Shown piece by piece: positions 9,927 to 24,543 of a DNA stretch of 64,000 bases. The notes below the pieces were generated by a model, which had not been told where the DNA came from, did no database searches, and saw nothing but the letters and a program-made list of their open reading frames with translations. The stretch is from Chlorokybus atmophyticus (Eukaryota > Plantae > Mesostigma and Chlorokybus algae). The position numbers were made by a program, and so were the translations under genes. The number at the start of each line of letters is the position of its first letter. The stretch's first letter is position 1. The stretch covers positions 186,001-250,000 of the forward strand of contig RHPI01001327.1 of the NCBI GenBank assembly GCA_009103225.1. The letters are read 5' to 3'.

Positions 9927-12459
9927 TCAGCCCCGTGACTTGACATCATCAGTTTGGTCTGGGGCAAGCGCAGGTCTCTGCTCAATCACCTCATCTACCA
10001 GACCAAACGCCTTTGCCTCTGCCGCAGACATGAAGTTGTCGCGCTCCATCGATGTCTCTGCGAGGCAGGAGCAGTGATGGTCAATAATTATGCCATGAGA
10101 TGTACAACTAAGCAAATGGGTGCGTAACCCAGTTGAAGAGTTTAAAGTGATGGCGCTCTGTATGTGCTGCAAAGCAAACACAGTCACAAACCGTGCAACT
10201 GTGTACACGTATTTATGTAAACGTATGGGCGCGCGCATGTGCACACACACACACGCGCGCACACACACGTACACTCGCGTGCACGCACGCACCCGGTCAC
10301 CCGGACACATGCACGCGCCTGTGCGCACGTGTGCGTGTGAGAGTATTTGGCATATGTAATTGTATGCCTGTGTGCGCGTGTACATACTGAAAACTCACAT
10401 CCACATAAGCATATACTCGATGTTTGTTCACCTATCGATTGTACGTCTTGCCCGGTGTGTTTGGCGTACAGCTTGTTGAGGCGCGATCGCATGTCGAGGA
10501 TCTCTCGCGCGTGGATCGCAATGTCGCTCGCCTGCCCTTGCACACCTCCCAACGGCTACACAACACGTACAGAGAAACATATCGACCATCGAGCCACAGC
10601 GAGACCACAACACGGACCAGCACGACCGCACCAAGTGAATGAGCACATACCCGCATGTTATGAGAGAGATGAGTGCGCGCACATGCGTGTGTGTCCAGGT
10701 GTGCATGACACAACGACAACAACAGCAAGAACACCCACTCACAAGCACGCGCGCGCGCATGTACACATACCTGGTGCACCATCATGCGTGCATTGGGCAG
10801 CGATCGCCGCTGCGTTGGTGCGCCCGCCGCCAGTATCAGCGTCGCCATTGACGACGCTTGTCCCAAGCAAAGCGTCGTCACATCGCACCGTACATACTAC
10901 AAACATGCAGCACAACATCACAACAACGACCCAACATGATATTGGGGCTTGCTAGGCTTGTGTGATTGATAACTACCAACATGAGCAACAACCACATGCC
11001 TGCATGGTGTCATATATGGCGAGGCCGGCAGTGACAAGGCCACCCGGGGAGTTTATGTACAGATTTATCTGCACACATCAGAGCAGCAATCAGTGAGAAA
11101 CTGATGTGAGAGAAAGACTGCACGAGTCCATGACGACGTGGGAGAGATAAATGTTGCTGTATCACTTAAGCGGCCGCACTACTATGCTTTCGCACAACTT
11201 TACAGCAAGTATGGCACGTGCTATGACGCAGCAGCGGGACGTGCAATGCATTGAAGAGTTTTCAACGCAATGCTTCATGTTGGAGGCAAACACATACATG
11301 CATATGAGCGCGCATGCACCAATGCGTACGTGCGTGGGCACATACGTGCGTGCACACGTACGTGGGTGCATTGGTGCGGTGGGGATGCGTGTGCGTGTCT
11401 GCGTGTGCGAGCATGCGTATGTGTAGGTGCGCATATGTGCAGGTGGTACGCGCAACCACATACCCACGCACCCAGCGCGCACACACGCATGCACAAACAA
11501 ACACATACCCACGCAGACACGGATGCGCGCACCCATGCCCGCACAAAGCAACAAACAGAAAGTCACAATAAACAAAACACGCAGCCATTGTAAACCTGCT
11601 ACGTACAGATCGTACACATCCTCGTGTAACAAGATTGCAACAATACCATGATCATGTATGTGTCTAGATGTGTGCTTCTGACCGGTTTTTCAGGGTTGTC
11701 AGACTCTAGGTATAGCAGCTGCGCAACAACGACAGAGGCCATGTCGTCCGATATCGGCCCGTTCACGCAGATGATCCGCTCCTTCAGCAGCCTCGAATAG
11801 ATATCAAACACCCTCTCCCCTGCACACACACACACACACACACACACCATCAATACGCAAAAACAAACACATGAACCAGAGTAGCATCATGATTACAGTA
11901 ACACCAGACAACCGATTGTCAAGTGTGTGGTATACACAGTTGCATAACCGAAAAGTGACTCCTACGAAGTGTTGCGGAGGATTTCATCAGTCTGGTCTGA
12001 AATACATGCTGCATGCTGGCAAGGCTATGAACTCACTCACTCACTGCAACGCAGGAGCTGGCACCCACAATATCCGTTCTGTACAAAACGATGCACACAA
12101 TAGCATGGGAACTATCTACGAGGACCGCATGGTTCATTGAGCTTTCGTCATGGTAGACTGCAATCAGGTGCTGCCCCTTGCTTGGCGCGTGTTGCATTGG
12201 TGAAGTTGATAATCAGTACGTGATGCTACCAGCATTATGACAAAAGAATGGCGATGGTTGAAGTGGCAATCGTGAGGAACTCAATGGTGATGTATGCAAT
12301 CGAGCTGGGCACACCTCTAGAGGTTTGTTCAATGACCATAGGTATGAGCCCCAGCCCGCGCCTCTGATTGCTTATCACCCTTCCTCCTCCCTCTCCGCCT
12401 CCCCTCCAGCCCGACCCGACCCTCCTCAGCAGCGTCCTGGACGACGATCTAAGCGCCAT
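9927..12459 (-). CDS. CLPP: ATP-dependent Clp protease proteolytic subunit, probably mitochondrial (ClpP2-type)
   Basis: R-rich presequence, then [12 protein letters not shown] / [22 protein letters not shown] / [10 protein letters not shown]...GLAIYDTMQ / [10 protein letters not shown] (catalytic Ser) ...PNARMMVHQ (His) / [10 protein letters not shown] / MERDNFMSA (Asp). Confidence 0.94.
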
Positions 12460-13262
12460 CGGCGGCAACGAGGACGACACGAATATAGCGGCCGCCGCCC
12501 GCCGCCGCCGCCGCCGCCGCCGCCGCTACCGACGCAGGACACAGGCATGCAGAGTGTTTGACGCAGGCACCAAGGCAAGTTGCGCAGTGTAGTAGTGCCT
12601 AGTGACTGTGTGGAGGTGTGTGCTTATTGCGAGGTTGCGTTCATCCCACCAGTGAGTCTTGTGTGTACACATAATTTTCGAGGGACGCTTGTGTTTACAG
12701 ACATCCAAGGTTCTGTGTGCGCTATACAGAATGGTGCTCGGAAACCTGGCTGTTGACTAAGGACCTATTGCTGTTGACTCATGTTACCGGCGAGGAACTA
12801 CTCTCTATTGTTGTGATACAGCACAGCGTGCAATGCATACGTGGTATACACACTGTACGTCCACAACTGCTGCCTGTGGAATGTTGTATCTTGCAGCCCA
12901 AGCACTCTGCTAAGATCAAGCTTTCATCAGTCGTAGCATACGAAGTATGCTCTCTTGACACACATGCATTGCAATAGAGCGCAGACGCAGCGACGCAGCA
13001 GCGGGAGGGAAGGCTACAGTGGCCGCTTTTCTGGTGGTACTAGTCTTGAAATTACTAGTACACTGAACTGGGGTGCCAAGCTCTATACTATACTCAATAC
13101 ACTGTACTACATGCAGCGTATCTAGCTGAGTACTCAACATTACCATTCTTATCACACGAGATGCCAAATGATATGGTACATGTCGCGAAGAATGCACCCA
13201 TGCACGCGCACAGGCAGCGGGTGCACACACGCACACATAAGTGCATGTGTGCGTGCCAAGTG

Positions 13263-16200
13263 CTAGTGCTTGACAAGGTTCCACAGCGTGTTGGTGCTGG
13301 CGTTGCCATGCTGGCTCTTGTTGAGTTCGGGGAAGCCGCCACCAGGCAGCACGTCCGACTGGTCCACATAAGGGTTGACCAGGGCCTCCAGCTGCAGAGA
13401 GAGACAACAACAGAAAGGGGATGATGAAATGGTCGTACCCGAGAAAGACAACGCGACTAAGTCCGATACAGGTCCGGGGCACCGCCGCCGGGCAGCATCT
13501 CCGAATGATCAGTATGCGGGTCCACAAACACCTCAAGCTGCCGGAAACACAACACAGAACAGAGCGCTAACGTCACGCGCACGCACAAGTAACCGCGATA
13601 CGCAAGCACGCTCTTGACTACAACATCATCGCGCGCACACACTCGTACACGCGCGCACACGTACATGAGTCTGCAACGCTGACTTTCACAGGACGCAACA
13701 CCCAACCATCGATGTGTCTATAAATGGCATGTACTTTACCTGTTGGAGCGGTATGGTTTCAATCTCATCCTGGCTGTGAAGTCTTTGTCGTGGCACAATG
13801 GGAAGCACGTGGTCATTCCTGCGAGGGATGACTTCGAGAGGGTTGTAGGCAGACCCTGGGCTGAACAGCACCTGACAACAGATGGCAAGGAGAGTGTTGA
13901 TTTTTGGCTGCATGATAATCAACAACAACTAAGGCTATAAGAACCCAAACACACCTCGACTTGGAACCGTTGAGGATCCTTTGGATCCAGATCCATGTTC
14001 TCATACATGCGAAAGACGATGTGCGTCAAGTAGTCCAACTCACCAGTTTCAACCTGCAGGCCAACAGTTTAAGCAACAAACGTTGTGATGACCTACAAAG
14101 GAAGTGTGATAGGTAATCAAGCACTCATACCAGCATATGCTGGGCTTGGTCGCAAACAACTGGGGGCCACATCAACGCCTCCCCGTCCGCGCACGGCGGA
14201 TCCAAGTGGCAATACCGCAAGACATTGATCAACGAGTGTATGTGCGACTCCTGCAAATCAAAAAATGAGCATGGAACCAACGTCAAGCCCATTTGACAGG
14301 ACACAACCCACTCATCAACCTACCGAGGTGAAGTAGATGCGCGTGCGAACGTGCCGGTTGGGGCTCTTCACGCCTTTAGCGTATCTGGTGTCCAGCTTGT
14401 AAGGGCGGGGCCCGCCATCATCCTCGTCACCCCCGCCGGCGCCTGGGATGCCGACAACATCGGTGTCCGCGGATATCCTGCCGGCGGAGCTCCCGCTGTC
14501 GGACATCGAGCTCGCCATCTCCCCCTGACCCGTCGACACCCTCCGCGGGATGGTGGGCGTCACGAGGGGCGGTGCGTCTGGCTGCTCTTGGCTGTATTGC
14601 AACACCTGCCATACATGCACAAGTGTTTAGCACACATGTGATGGGTACATGCCTCCTTGTCATTGGTTGTCACTCACTTGTGCAGGCAATCACACACACC
14701 GAGCTCACCTCTAAGCTTTCGTTTCGGGTATTGTTGAGATCGATGATTAGCTTGCGCAGCAACTTGTTGCAGATGAGCGCTCCTATCTTGAGCTTCTGCG
14801 ACGGGTCAATGCCATACTCGTTCGGGATGACTCCATCAGCCAACACTTTCGCCACAGCATACAGCTCGTCAAGGCCAGTCAAGCCCAGATGGCTGTTGTG
14901 CAGCGAGTCGTACTTGACTGAGTCGTAGATGTCCGGTATCTTACTAATGTCGAAGCGGCCTTTCCTTTCGTTGTAAATATCGTTCTGCAACTTGCTCCAT
15001 CGCGCGTGCATCAGCAGGAAACTCTCACCTAACATGGCAATGCACTTGAGAAATGTGGCATGAGGTTATGCTAGTGCCACAATACAACAAGTACAACTGC
15101 AACACATTTGTCAGAGCATACCTCCACAAGGAGCGCAGCCATGCTCCTGATGTCCATGCCAGTCATCTGTCGTGTGGTCCGGCATCATCAACATCCCTGG
15201 CACATCAAGCTCATCGTCGCTTCCGCTGCCGCTGCTCTTGGTGGAGTTGGGGTTGGCGCCGCTGGGAGCCGTGATATGCACACCAAACACCGACAGGCTG
15301 CCTTTCCTGCGATGACCCTCCAGCGGCGAAGGCAAACCCTCCAGCATCGCACGGCAGTGACCGTGCAGTTGCTCTGTTAAACTCTTGATTAACTCAACCT
15401 GAACATTGAGCCAAACAACCACATCAACACGCTGCAATGATGAACATTACTCCCACACATGGCGCTGAGCACAGGGAGAAGATGATGTCTATACCAGTCT
15501 GTGCAGAGTTTCTTCAGAACTTGCGGGCATGGCAGATGGCAGCGGGACAGCTAGGACACTCCCGGGCGAGCGTGGCGTTTGGACTGCAGCCTCGGGCTGA
15601 TCGAGTGTGTTACCATCGTACGCGGGAAGGGGCAGGCTATCAGCGAGGGACATGAAGTCAGGTCCTGATGCGCTCGAATTGCCAGCCCACGGTGGTTTCA
15701 TTGGCGAGGGCGCAGGAGACGGGTCGTCTCTTGCGCTCCAGCTGTGCGGACGATACGGCACGCCCGTGATGGTTGTGTATAGCTGCGCCTTGGCTTTGCG
15801 TATCTCATCATCCGCCCCGCTGCCAACGTAATCCAACATCGCCGCATCCTTGCTCACCAAGCTCACCTAAGACAAGGTGTGTCACCATACACATGCACAC
15901 ACGACCACTGTGCAATGCGATAACTCATCAAACAATTCACACGATACCAGTATTGGTGTAAGCGGGCCTTCAAGGTCAAGCAAGCCTTTGGCAAACGCCG
16001 CAGCCGACATCTGCACGCGGCCTTCATCGGATGTGTACAGCTTCAAGTCATGGCGATACGTGCTGTGCAACCTCAGGAGCCCTGTCCCTTGTTCGCCTGA
16101 CACTCGCAAATGCAACGAGCCCAGTATCAAATCACCAGCACTCAGAGCACACCGCCATGCTATGCTGCATGTGAGACAGGCAAGCGAATGCGCATATGGA

Positions 16201-19200
16201 CATATTAGATACCTGGATACATGTTGAGACGGAAGTCATTGCCAAGTGTTTCAGCTTGCTTGCGCCCAGCATGTGTCAGGACACCGCCATACTTTAGAAT
16301 CAGCAACGCCTGCGGCAATGACCGGATGAACAAGAGGTGCGTGGGAGCTGATCATCAAGTGCATGACATGCGTGAGAGCAGCTGCCAACATACTTGCGTG
16401 ACTTTTTCTTCACTGTCGACCTCTGTCCAAGCCATGGGCTTGAGCTGAACCTAAACAATTACCAACCATAAGCAGGTCAGTAAGGTTACTCAGCTTTGAA
16501 ATTGTTGTTAGTGTTAAAGGAACGGATGGAGTGTGCCGTTCAATGGCAACGCAACCTTGCGATTGATGCCAGAGAAAGAGCCTCCTTCTTCCAGCACTGC
16601 CTTCACATGCAACAACTGTTCAATGACCTCCTCGTTCTCGTCCTCTTCTACCACGCAATTTTCTGCTTCACCCCCATACCTGAAGCCAGGTTGCAAAGAT
16701 GATTGGTAGCTGCATTGTGCGCAATATCAACAGGCAGATGCATGCTCACTTCTTTGGTAGCAATGAACGCGTGGCATCCAGCAGATCCTGCAGCTGCACA
16801 GCGCTCTTCAGCTTTGCCTCTGAGCGTGTTTTGCCCCCATTGTATTTCATCAGTATGTCCAGATACAATGGCTGCGTGACCAACATCTTCATCTTTTGTT
16901 TGGGAGTGCGGTCGCCACTAAGCGTGTGCCACACAAAGATGAATTCAGCAGCGGAGCACTGCTAGCAAGAAATTAGCATAAATATGAAGTTGTACAGATA
17001 CGCTTACTGGCGCACAACAACAAGCACACAGCGCAGCTCGAGGCTCGACAGCGCTGACGGTTTCCCAAGCGGAGTGCCCAAAGCCTCACGCTTGTCATCA
17101 CCATACCCGTCTATAGATGTACCTGCTAGATCAGGTTGTTGTATTGGTCAGTCGCTCGCATGGCAGACAAGACAATGACAAACATCTCATTCACTCATAC
17201 CTGGTGAGACAGCAACACTGCCTGAGGACATGGTTGGCACCAGGGCTGGTGGCAGCCGCAAGAGGCGGTGTGGTGCGAGTGCCTTCAGAGCCATTGACCG
17301 CAACAAGCAAGCCGCATCATCATAATACTTGTGGGAGTTCTTGACAAAACTCCAACCGTTGACATCGCAGACGTATGATTTGCCCTTTGACCGTAACAGG
17401 TCAAAGCCGCATACCTGCAACACCGCTTGTTGAATGTGCCTATCCGCCAACAAGCATGCCAACCAACACAGCCCAAGAAGAAGCGTACCGACTGCTTGAA
17501 TGCCTGACACACTTGCCGCGCAATCTCTTTCTCTTCGGGTGTGAGCAGGACTGGAAATCTGACCTGCGAAGCAATGCGCACGTTCGGCATTGCTGCAGCT
17601 ATATAGCTCAGTGTAGACAAGTAGAGAATGTTGCGCCTCACGCTTGACGCACGCTTGTTCACCTCTTTTCCATCAGCACTACGGACAACGCGCCCATCAA
17701 CTGTTGGGGCTTTGCGTGCCTCTGCATGAGCATAGTCGGGGCCAACAGTGTACACCTACAGTGTCAACAGGGTGAGGGGGGTGTCGTAATGGTTGTAAGG
17801 TATTGCCTTCAATGAGCAGCATAAGCAGCGCCAATACAACATGTGATGAGCACCTTCACGTCTGTGCCACCAGTTGGCATGAATGTTTCATAAATAAACG
17901 AGCCGTTCCTGCGTACTTTGTTCTGGTCCGCATTGAAATCGCTGGACCTATCACCCACCTGGTTTTCAGAGTGCCAGTGTAAGTAGCAACACAGCACTCA
18001 CAGCACACTTGCCGTTTTGCCATCAGTCACCTTGCGAAACAAGCTCTTCATTCCACCTCCAACGGAAGAGGGGTAGTAGATGTTCACGCGATGGTCTTCA
18101 CCTGCGTGTTTACAATGGTATTGTAAGCAAACATGACACGTGGTGCATAAGCTCTGCTGCATGTGCTGGCTGTACCGTCTGCGGGTTTCTCCACAAAAGG
18201 TTTCGTGATGCGCACGCCATCCAGCTCTACGTACTCGGGGTCTTCAATGAACCGAGCCTCATTCACTGGAAACCTTCTGTCGCCCTCATCTCGGTTGACA
18301 ATGATGTGCTCAGGCGTCGTGATGCCATGCTTGCGCAGCAGCTGATATTAACACACCATACATGTCAAGGCAACAACACAGCTACGGTCTATCTGGCTGC
18401 ATGTGCGCTTGTTGCAACACACTTACGCTGTACATAATACGCCTGTCATACAACGAGCGCTGCTCAGGCAGATCATTGAACAGGAAGGGCCTGCACGCAC
18501 ATGCAAAGTAAGCTTCCATCATGCTATACACACACTTGGAGCACAATGATAGATGATACAACCGTCACAACACCTTCTGAGCTTAGCGTATGCTTCTGCC
18601 TTGTGCAGAGGGAAGCCATAAGAGAAGAAGGCAATGAGGCAGTGGCAAGCAGGCCAGCTTTCCACAGGCTGTTCCAGTATCATCTGATCCCCGAATATGA
18701 TGACCTGCTCGCCAAGACAGCAGCATCTTTAGGCTTGCCAGCTGCGGCTGTGCTACACCCAAGAACCAACTGGACCGACCCACTGACCTCAAAGTCGCCA
18801 AACGCCCGTATTCTCTCAAGTATTTGCTGCATAGGTTTGGACCGCGCCTGCATGCCAATGCACGTTTTGCAGCAAGTCAAGCCGTAATCATACCCACTGG
18901 TACCTGGGGCTTACTCAACTGGCAATGAACAGAAGTCTCTAACGACAGCGTGGGCAAGTACTGCAGCATGTGAGTGCATTGTAGTACACACGCAAACAGT
19001 GTGACGGGTCAATTCAATACAAGACCGGGTTCAGTAATCGTCAGCTGCTGTGGCAAGGTACGCAAAGCACCAGCAGCTTGCTGACAATCCAAAAGCATCA
19101 ACTTCCCTCATAAGCAACCCTTGAATCAACAGTAGTATAAGTTCAATTACGTTGAGTGATTGTCATTATGCTCAAATACCCTGGCTTGGGCAACAAAGCT

Positions 19201-21132: not shown

Positions 21133-21355
21133 TGGCTGTGACTAGTTTGTGTAGCCAGTTGTGCTTACCGTATGAGACTTAGGTGATTTTGTGTGGTGTT
21201 GTGAGTGTTCATTAGAATCATTGTTTACGACAGGGTCACACTTGGAACAGCATTTCAGCCCGGGTGTTTGGCGAAAATGGCTGGTAAAGGTGCCTAGTGA
21301 AGCTCTAGTCCCTGTAGTCCCTTTCGGGGTTGCAATGCAAAGAGTAAGGAGAGAT

Positions 21356-21898
21356 GGGGGGGGGGGGGGGGGGGGGGGGGNNNNNNNNNNNNNNNNNNNN
21401 NNNNNNNNNNNNNNNNNNNNNNNNNNNNNNNNNNNNNNNNNNNNNNNNNNNNNNNNNNNNNNNNNNNNNNNNNNNNNNNNNNNNNNNNNNNNNNNNNNNN
21501 NNNNNNNNNNNNNNNNNNNNNNNNNNNNNNNNNNNNNNNNNNNNNNNNNNNNNNNNNNNNNNNNNNNNNNNNNNNNNNNNNNNNNNNNNNNNNNNNNNNN
21601 NNNNNNNNNNNNNNNNNNNNNNNNNNNNNNNNNNNNNNNNNNNNNNNNNNNNNNNNNNNNNNNNNNNNNNNNNNNNNNNNNNNNNNNNNNNNNNNNNNNN
21701 NNNNNNNNNNNNNNNNNNNNNNNNNNNNNNNNNNNNNNNNNNNNNNNNNNNNNNNNNNNNNNNNNNNNNNNNNNNNNNNNNNNNNNNNNNNNNNNNNNNN
21801 NNNNNNNNNNNNNNNNNNNNNNNNNNNNNNNNNNNNNNNNNNNNNNNNNTGTAACAACACGTATGTGTTATGCGTATGAATTAAGCATAGGGGGGGGG
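21356..21898. other. Assembly gap (N, 21381-21849) flanked by poly-G
   Basis: A G run precedes the Ns, and a shorter G run lies about 40 bp after them. Confidence 0.95.
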
Positions 21899-22405: not shown

Positions 22406-24259
22406 TGCAGAATCGATTGTCAGCCCATGTAAGCACAGTATACACACATTTGCTCGCACATGCACAAAAGCACACACATCAGTGATGTAATGCAGTCAGC
22501 ACACTACCACTTACTGAGGTTGGAGTAGCCAACATCTGCAAGAAGGAGCTCCCGCAGAAACAATGCGAGAGCGCCAGTCATGAGCGCACGCTCCAAAGGT
22601 GGCATGGCGGCAACAGCAGCATGGTCAATCTGCATGGAAGATTGCTGGTAAGTTGTTTGCCAGCACACAATCTTGTTCCTGTGTGCCTTGTGAGAGAATC
22701 AACATGCCGCCTGGTGCCAACACTTACCTCAAACGGGTTGGCAGCAGGTGGGTGCGCATTCATTATTATCAGTTCCTCCACAATGTCCCATACTTTGTGT
22801 CCTGTGGCAAAAGAGATGTCATGACAGAGACTGCCAGCTTTCATACATTTCTGGTGCGCATCTGTGTGGGTTCATCACCGTTGCAACTGTTGTGCTTCAT
22901 CAAACTGACCGTTGCTCTGCCACTTTTGAGTCGTGTTCAAGTCTAACGGGAGGTCCTTCAGGTTGGCGTTTGCTGAGAGCCGGTTGTGGTTGGTACGCAG
23001 CTGTTGGAAAGCATAGATTGACAATGCGTGTTAACGAGTGCATCAATGGCGAGCGCTGTGCGTGCACACGCCCTCGCGCACATGCGCGTGTGTCTGTGTA
23101 TGTTCTGCGCCGGATTCAGGAATTCAGCCAGCAGGGACCAGAGCACCCACATAAAACTATACTACAACTGACAAGTGTATGATATCAAGTCCAGCTCACC
23201 CAAACATATGGCCACTGGTATCGCGCGTATGCACCAATGAGGAAAACCGTCTCTTCTGGCGTGCTCTGCACGCAAACAAGATGGTCACTGCTGCAGCTTA
23301 ACAAGCTGTATTGCAATACTGCATCAAGTAGATGAAAGGTACAGCGACTTTGCTGTGCAGACATGCGTTAGCCAAGCATCCAATGACGTTTGCTTACTAC
23401 CTTCTCAATCTCCGCAGACGCAGGAGAAGCAGGAGGGTACCAACGGGACGGTGTCACTGTGGGTATTCGAAGCCCCCGACTGGTTTGCAGTGTCGAGGAT
23501 GGTGTCACCTACGTGGAGTGCATGAATGGAACACTCTGCTATGTGTGCTTGACCCGTATAACATATGCCTGCAACAATGTGCTGTGCAGCTCCAAACATG
23601 ATAATCTTAACATGACCGTGTATGGCGCCGGTTAACAGATAAATGTGATGGGTTGCAACTGTCGTGAGGAACCCATACCTGTCTTGAGGCTGGTTGATGC
23701 TTAACAGTAACGAGCAGCTCCTCCCTCCCCCTGAGATAGAGCTCCACATGCCGAAAGCCCCGCAAACAGCCCATCCGCAAGCAATCACTGCGTGTGTGGT
23801 GGGAGCATGCAATAAAAACTTGGTTAATTCAGGGATTCATCAAGCACACACATGGCAGGTACCGACTCTTCAGCTGTCATGAAGCCTCCAAGTTGTCTGT
23901 GTGACTTTGTGCCTAACTGCAGGAATGAAAGGCGGAAGAGGCAGCTAACGGATGCACAACTACGGAGCATGAAACACTCTCGATACAAACGCATACAACG
24001 CAAGGAAACAAGCATCTGTAAGGGGAGCAGTCAAGGGTATCGCAGGCACTGCACCGTATTTCCTTGGAACGAGACAACAATGAGAGCATTGCATACGCAT
24101 TATATCATGGTATGCTCCAATGCTGCTTGTTTCAACAAGGCATGACAATGCAGCACTTATTCACACGCTTTCAACACATACCGGTAGAACTCTTCCAGCT
24201 GCGAAGTGCTCCCTGAAGACTGCTGCTGTTGCTGTTGCTGCTGTTGCTGCTGCTGTTGT

Positions 24260-24294
<35 letters not shown>

Positions 24295-24426
24295 GTGGTG
24301 TTGCTGATGGAAGGGAGACGGCTGCTGCTGGTGCGCCGCCCCTCCGCCTCCCCACCTGTGCGTGGGCGTGTTGGGCCCCGACCCAACCACCACCGGCGCT
24401 GACGGCTGCTGCGGGTAGTACGCCAT
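22165..24426 (-). CDS. Hypothetical spliced protein with polyQ N-terminus; 3' end uncertain
   Basis: ATG at 24426 gives MAYYPQQP...polyQ...EEFYR|GT. Downstream exons have canonical boundaries and consistent phases: LRTNHNRLSANANLKDLPLDLNTTQKWQSN, DAHQKCMKAGSLCHDISFATGHKVWDIVEELIIMNAHPPAANPFE|GTAAGT, IDHAAVAAMPPLERALMTGALALFLRELLLADVGYSNL|GTAAGT. No family recognised, and the middle exons are unresolved. Confidence 0.55.
24222..24311 (-). repeat. CAG/CAA microsatellite encoding polyglutamine
   Basis: (TGC/TGT)n tract on the plus strand, inside exon 1 of the orphan gene. Confidence 0.85.
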
Positions 24427-24543
24427 CGCCGCCTCCCCACCCACCACCACCAACACCAACAATAACAGAACCAAGCGGCTTTCAACTAACAGCAGGGCTG
24501 AGGCTTATGCTCATGTTTGTGCTTGAGCTTAAGCTCGAGTTCC

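Follow-up and report, generated by a model that had tools for sequence, protein, structure and literature searches.

Does the PPIP5K/VIP1 gene of the green alga Chlorokybus atmophyticus encode one C-terminus or two? PPIP5K sets the level of InsP8, which acts in plants, fungi and animals as the messenger of phosphate status to SPX proteins, and Chlorokybus is one of the deepest streptophyte branches. An earlier note on this DNA had read the gene as PPIP5K/VIP1 and had given it two duplicated terminal exons, A and B, each serving as an alternative end of the protein (the window below means the whole 64-kb stretch of DNA analysed, and all positions are counted within it). The identity of the gene was borne out. 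Single exons of the window matched His_Phos_2 (histidine acid phosphatase), and a profile search with the exons and full-length relatives recovered a public protein model, eukprot jgi/Chlat1/8008 (P0208, 1176 residues), that maps exactly onto 24 exons on the minus strand, from 19341 to 13266. P0208 contains PF18086 (1.7e-37), a RimK ATP-grasp domain (4.8e-6) and PF00328 (3.6e-54), which is the domain order of PPIP5K/VIP1/VIH enzymes, with an N-terminal PPIP5K2_N and ATP-grasp kinase followed by His_Phos_2. As can be seen directly in the public annotation, the last coding exon of P0208 is exon B, and exon A is unannotated. It sits inside the last intron, which is 348 nt long; the 23 introns of the gene otherwise measure 69–116 nt (median 83), except for the first (404 nt), and a last intron of this length against a median of 83 nt is what would be expected if it held an extra exon. 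The features of the gene's 3′ end are as follows, in the order of transcription.

13740 to 13871, minus strand: exon 23, the last exon shared by the two readings (...ETIPLQQ, phase-0 end), exactly P0208 residues 1091-1134.
13738 to 13739, minus strand: donor GT (CAACAG/GTAAAGTAC), shared by both acceptors if both are used; leave-one-out PWM score 8.0, among the gene's best donors.
13686 to 13739, minus strand: read-through of the exon 23 donor, 17 codons and a stop, weakly similar to B; possibly a third, degenerate copy or the remnant of an unspliced ancestral exon.
13538 to 13559, minus strand: exon A acceptor (CAG) with its pyrimidine-rich tract; two 1-nt gaps suffice to align this stretch to the 24 nt that precede exon B.
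13457 to 13537, minus strand: exon A, 26 codons and TAG, unannotated; by alignment and selection tests, a paralogue of exon B over the latter's first 23 codons.
13392 to 13456, minus strand: 65-nt spacer from the A stop to the B acceptor, containing the B pyrimidine tract and a weak donor-like CGG/GTACGAC at 13438.
13263 to 13391, minus strand: exon B, 42 codons and TAG, the annotated last coding exon, exactly P0208 residues 1135-1176.
12695 to 13262, minus strand: presumed shared 3′ UTR, predicted to reach to the only TGTAA of the strand (12699), the putative poly(A) signal.

GT/GC-rich low-complexity repeats of the CACGCGCACA type (plus strand) lie at 13203-13256, just past the exon B stop, and at 13574-13663, in the spacer upstream of exon A, and there are short complementary arms at 13242-13256 and 13651-13665.

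The duplication itself can be read directly from the alignment of the two exons. Downstream of the ...IPLQQ donor (13739), the two phase-0 acceptors with pyrimidine tracts described in the earlier note are present at 13537 and 13391, the tracts being 70% (A) and 80% (B) pyrimidine and both followed by CAG, and the two translations came out identical to those it gave. Aligned without gaps over the first 23 codons, A and B share 13/23 residues, and the third base differs in nine of those 13 codons, again as previously counted. By codon position, nucleotide identity is 17, 20 and 8 of 23 for the first, second and third positions, respectively, an excess of third-position differences with a hypergeometric P of 2.6e-4. 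The likeness also extends into the intron, where ~22 nt before each acceptor align with two single-base gaps, and it ends sharply on the other side: in the same register, the 30–55 nt beyond the 23 codons are 20–22% identical, that is, randomised. As in other tandem-duplicated exons, the two homologous exons are adjacent, share a phase and each have an acceptor of their own. That A and B might resemble each other by chance has next to no probability in our judgement, as the pair scores 76 (BLOSUM62, 23 residues) and nowhere else in the six frames of the 64-kb window does a stretch of 23 residues reach 30 against exon B, and as chance would also have to supply the shared phase, the acceptor on both stretches and the homologous intron ends. 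We take exon A to be an ancient tandem duplicate of the intron end together with the first 23 codons of exon B.

Evolutionarily, the age of the duplication and its signature of selection are likewise directly visible, and they agree with the earlier claim of an old duplication with both copies under purifying selection, within the limits of 23 codons. Nei–Gojobori estimates over these codons give pS = 0.66 (dS ~1.6, near saturation) and pN = 0.24, for an omega of ~0.18, and a likelihood-ratio test rejects a model with constraint on one copy and neutrality of the other (P = 0.02). In simulations in which A was neutral since the duplication and B accepted synonymous changes only, the combination of third-position identity of at most 8/23 with an open frame in which 13 or more of the 23 residues are identical occurred with P ≤0.005 at any branch length, a value that leaves aside the additional requirement that A carry no indels. 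The only reading frame that reaches A is the PPIP5K frame, entered through the phase-0 donor at 13739. Thus, the open frame and the pattern of selection, as captured by the simulation and the likelihood-ratio test, indicate that exon A has been read as protein in its present frame through a large part of its history. The use of A may nonetheless have been lost fairly recently, which would be compatible with a selection test on 23 codons. Such a loss is the core of the main competing account, in which A served as a coding exon through most of its history, or was retained briefly as a duplicate, and is now skipped, leaving B-type protein only and making any splicing to A mere noise. We regard this account as unlikely, though far from negligible. 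The limited statistical power of 23 codons (likelihood-ratio P = 0.02) leaves room for it, but the frame of A is open and free of indels, its acceptor is kept, its codon-position pattern is strong, and its use could have ceased only recently when measured against a divergence of dS ~1.6.

Functionally, the duplicated segment belongs to a recognizable part of the enzyme. In green-lineage relatives, the last common exon is followed by a conserved motif, L-T-L-x-x-L-E-x-h-h-x-P-F-A..., which continues in streptophytes as ...MPAEDFPP...VLERLVNLWPF. The first part of this C-terminal motif has homologues in exon A and in exon B alike, and both exons keep the four most conserved positions of the family (E2, P7, P16 and P21); put the other way round, the plant and algal VIH/VIP1 C-terminus (LEKMVRPFAMPAEDFPP...VLERLVNLWPF) is homologous to B and, over its first 23 residues, to A. 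The two copies do not fit the family equally well, with a mean BLOSUM62 score of 14.7 for B versus 9.4 for A and B scoring higher in 46 of the 58 homologues. One conserved aromatic position is Phe in 78% of homologues, Tyr in B and His in A, and exon B continues into a further 19-residue tail that A does without. The absence of both the aromatic residue and the C-terminal tail from A counts in favor of its being a disused copy.

Structurally, the position of the segment could be read from a predicted fold. An AlphaFold model of P0208 residues 380-1176 (mean pLDDT 70.8, pTM 0.74) contains a confident helix (pLDDT ~93) at residues 1132-1142, which spans the junction of exon 23 with exon B, and confidence falls to ~40 over the last 27 residues of P0208, except for a weak helix at ...LWNLVKH. 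The alignment of P0208 with the solved yeast Vip1 phosphatase domain stops just before the exon 23/B helix, and in yeast Vip1 the domain boundary is marked by alpha9, a well-defined helix and the most C-terminal one (PMC11836120). From the modelled helix and the point where the alignment ends, residues 1132-1142 are predicted to form the counterpart of yeast alpha9, and the final helix of the phosphatase domain would then take its second half from either A or B. Exchanging B for A would alter 8 of the 11 residues of this closing helix, as well as the loop behind it, and would remove the 19-residue tail.

How, then, would exon A be used? Splice sites were scored with a PWM derived from the gene's own 23 introns, and the sequences of the sites themselves are directly observed. 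The B acceptor scores 8.1 bits and the A acceptor 3.9 bits, ~4 bits weaker; the latter is the second best AG in the last intron, and real acceptors of the gene span −1.5 to 11, a range that includes it. This difference in strength is a further point for a disused A. The earlier picture of two independent terminal exons, on the other hand, did not survive: A has no 3′ UTR or poly(A) signal of its own, as only 65 nt separate its stop from the B acceptor and neither TGTAA nor AATAAA occurs between them, the first TGTAA on the minus strand past exon B being at 12699. An A-type mRNA would therefore have to come from alternative 3′ splice-site use or cassette splicing, with B as its 3′ UTR. We posit that donor 13739 usually joins the strong acceptor at 13391, giving exon B and the annotated form, and that in a fraction of transcripts it would join the weaker, nearer acceptor at 13537, giving exon A; translation of the latter form would stop at the TAG of A, exon B would then serve as 3′ UTR, and only the B form would carry the final 19-residue tail. 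A second C-terminal PPIP5K isoform made by this 3′ splice-site choice is, in our assessment, the best explanation of the locus, and we put it at slightly better than even. From the genomic sequence we infer that A is spliced and translated today, and the same holds for the proportions of the two forms and for any functional difference between them.

That the public annotation uses only B would seem to speak for a skipped A, but P0208 is a poor witness on this point. The genome encodes the RHGDR phosphatase motif when donor 17007 (GTAAGC) joins acceptor 16918 across a 90-nt intron. P0208 instead splices RHGDR out (window 16917-17048, minus strand) by means of donor 17027 (−3.9 bits) and acceptor 16958 (−1.5 bits), which are the lowest-scoring splice sites of the gene under its own-intron PWM. 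The annotation is thus probably wrong at the catalytic motif, and its choice of exon B is accordingly no strong evidence about the RNA.

A different splicing pattern could also bring A into use, a prospect to which we assign a small probability, to be added to that of 3′ splice-site choice when the overall chance that A is used is considered. In one version, A would be a cassette (acceptor 13537, donor ~13438) with translation ending at the TAG of A, and in the other, acceptor 13537 and the donor-like site at 13531 would delimit a 6-nt micro-exon that inserts Leu-Glu before exon B. Donor-like sites for both exist, GAG/GTGTTTG at 13531, six bases into exon A, scoring 7.6 bits and the site at 13438 scoring 3.2 bits. 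A stop less than 50 nt from the last exon junction usually escapes nonsense-mediated decay, and the stop of the cassette form falls within that distance, so that decay is not expected by the usual rule. The second intron of the cassette form would be 47 nt long, however, below all 23 introns of the gene (69–404 nt), and the micro-exon would leave the protein-level selection on codons 3–23 of A unexplained.

Turning to possible control of a 3′ splice-site choice, folding of the last-intron RNA gave z = 0.5, no sign of regulation by competing structures, and no obvious selector/docking complementarity was found in the last intron; a repeat search returned low-complexity GT/GC repeats only. Two further candidates were examined and rejected: frame-shifting donors inside A (13482 and 13469), which yield no sensible protein, and a small ORF starting from a Met inside the last intron, whose translation is of low complexity. 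As a separate observation, the start of exon A, CAG/CTTGAG/GTGTTTG (13526-13537, minus strand), resembles a recursive splice site or a 6-nt micro-exon.

The relatives available for comparison are distant. The nearest database proteins are ~50% identical overall (Spirogloea, land plants and Gonium), a HMMER search with the 131-residue exon returned relatives at ≤67% identity only, whose C-termini show no close match to A or B, and the profile search recovered the alga's own model P0208 but no close relative. Word searches with the two stop-free stretches containing A and B returned no match, an outcome that their length filter makes uninformative. The best C-terminal match, P0018, comes from an intronless transcript contig and hence has no gene structure to compare. 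The PPIP5K genes of Marchantia, Closterium and Gonium have neither an intron at the QQ/LE position nor a second copy of the C-terminal segment; in Marchantia and Closterium the plant-type C-terminus is, unlike that of Chlorokybus, a single-copy segment within one exon without an intron. On these comparisons, the duplication is specific to the Chlorokybus side of the tree and the intron probably is too. The earlier note had named, as grounds against two isoforms, the use of one junction only together with absence or degeneration of the other exon in relatives. Exon A is indeed absent from Marchantia, Closterium and Gonium, but all three are very distant and without the intron itself, so its absence there decides nothing about the use of A. 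In a scan of metagenome contigs, the only matches were unrelated M1-aminopeptidase-like ones to 'QHGNASTN': the exon B tail (13266-13320, minus strand) resembles an M1-aminopeptidase-like motif in three low-GC metagenome contigs (L005-L007), most likely by chance, the search having been seeded on that 8-mer.

In intron gain by tandem duplication (the Rogers-type model), the 5′ end of the new intron is homologous to the exon that follows its acceptor. Such an origin has some echo here, as eight residues of the donor read-through, PFIDTSMV, align with PYVDQSDV of exon B; the similarity is weak, shuffles giving P ~0.01 and random 17-mers from the genome 0.016. We weighed other origins for A than the copying of an existing intron end and exon, namely that A was captured from another PPIP5K-like gene, or that the whole last intron was born by tandem duplication within a last exon that had been uninterrupted, in which case the read-through piece would be the first of three copies. 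Both concern origin alone and are compatible with any scenario of usage. The missing intron in Marchantia, Closterium and Gonium, the in-frame read-through that resembles exon B (P ~0.01) and the GT/GC-rich low-complexity DNA that follows both the read-through piece and exon B all agree with one or other of these origins, and exon capture has been proposed as the origin of exon 4A in KRAS (PMC9882654). Yet the read-through similarity is weak and depends on a 2-codon gap, low-complexity repeats of this kind may be frequent throughout the genome, and the searches made turned up no second Chlorokybus PPIP5K. Moreover, the A/B homology begins inside the intron, ~22 nt upstream of each acceptor, which suggests that the intron predates the duplication and is a better fit with duplication of an existing intron–exon boundary. 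We consider these other origins quite improbable and retain duplication of the existing boundary.

Duplicated alternative last coding exons are already known as a class, and inclusion of KRAS exon 4A, the closest parallel, leaves exon 4B as untranslated sequence. In KRAS, as in the arrangement proposed here, a pair of homologous last coding exons is arranged in tandem, the upstream exon has its own stop, and the products would share a catalytic body and differ at the C-terminus only (PMC9882654). The two systems differ in that use of both KRAS exons is documented and has been conserved for >400 million years, whereas for Chlorokybus we infer the use of exon A; in addition, A lies 65 nt from B, and the segment concerned is the end of a phosphatase fold and not a membrane anchor. 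Tandem exon duplications more broadly, including mutually exclusive and alternative exons, resemble the pair in being adjacent, of the same phase, provided with splice sites on both copies and under purifying selection. They have been described mainly in animals, and the Chlorokybus pair departs from them in being terminal and unequal (26 versus 42 codons) and in the unremarkable folding of its intron (z = 0.5). To our knowledge, duplicated alternative exons are rare in the green lineage. This class of exons and its control by RNA structure are reviewed in PMC6071210.

Within the enzyme family, the only mention of PPIP5K isoforms that we found for algae or plants was the automatic 'isoform X' naming of NCBI records, and we found no earlier report of duplicated last coding exons for PPIP5K or for this lineage. 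Human PPIP5K1 and PPIP5K2 belong to the same family, and the variants we know of affect the long disordered tail and not the last phosphatase helix; we know of no duplicated exon among them. The two human genes have >30 exons and are alternatively spliced (PMC13573052), and their C-terminal region is a disordered interaction domain according to the passage that cites reference 72 in PMC11836120.

What the locus means depends on whether A is used. If it is unused, the locus is an ordinary relic of little import. If it is used, the alga would supply two natural versions of the closing helix, with and without the tail, a ready-made test of the role of this segment. The wider proposal, that Chlorokybus regulates PPIP5K by the choice between duplicated exons, switching the last phosphatase helix and dropping the conserved tail, is one we offer tentatively and hold to be rather doubtful. 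Were it true, an exon switch, for example on phosphate supply, would shift the balance of kinase and phosphatase activities that sets InsP8, and the balance between these activities in PPIP5K is an open question (PMC11836120). Such a PPIP5K isoform switch would have no described precedent in the green lineage, and it would add a rare plant-side example to the known duplicated alternative exons. The locus is also a clean, small case of ancient exon duplication in a green alga, one in which an intron and an alternative exon perhaps arose together.

A few features of the surrounding window deserve mention in their own right. The next gene downstream (about 11600-12530, minus strand) resembles a ClpP protease subunit, and the TGTAA at 12699 is the single one between this ClpP-like gene and PPIP5K. 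About 2 kb upstream of the PPIP5K start, at ~21300-21860, an N run (assembly gap) lies beside a proline-codon repeat, and farther upstream, at 24160-24504 on the minus strand, a stop-free stretch contains ~35 glutamine codons in a CAG/CAA repeat.
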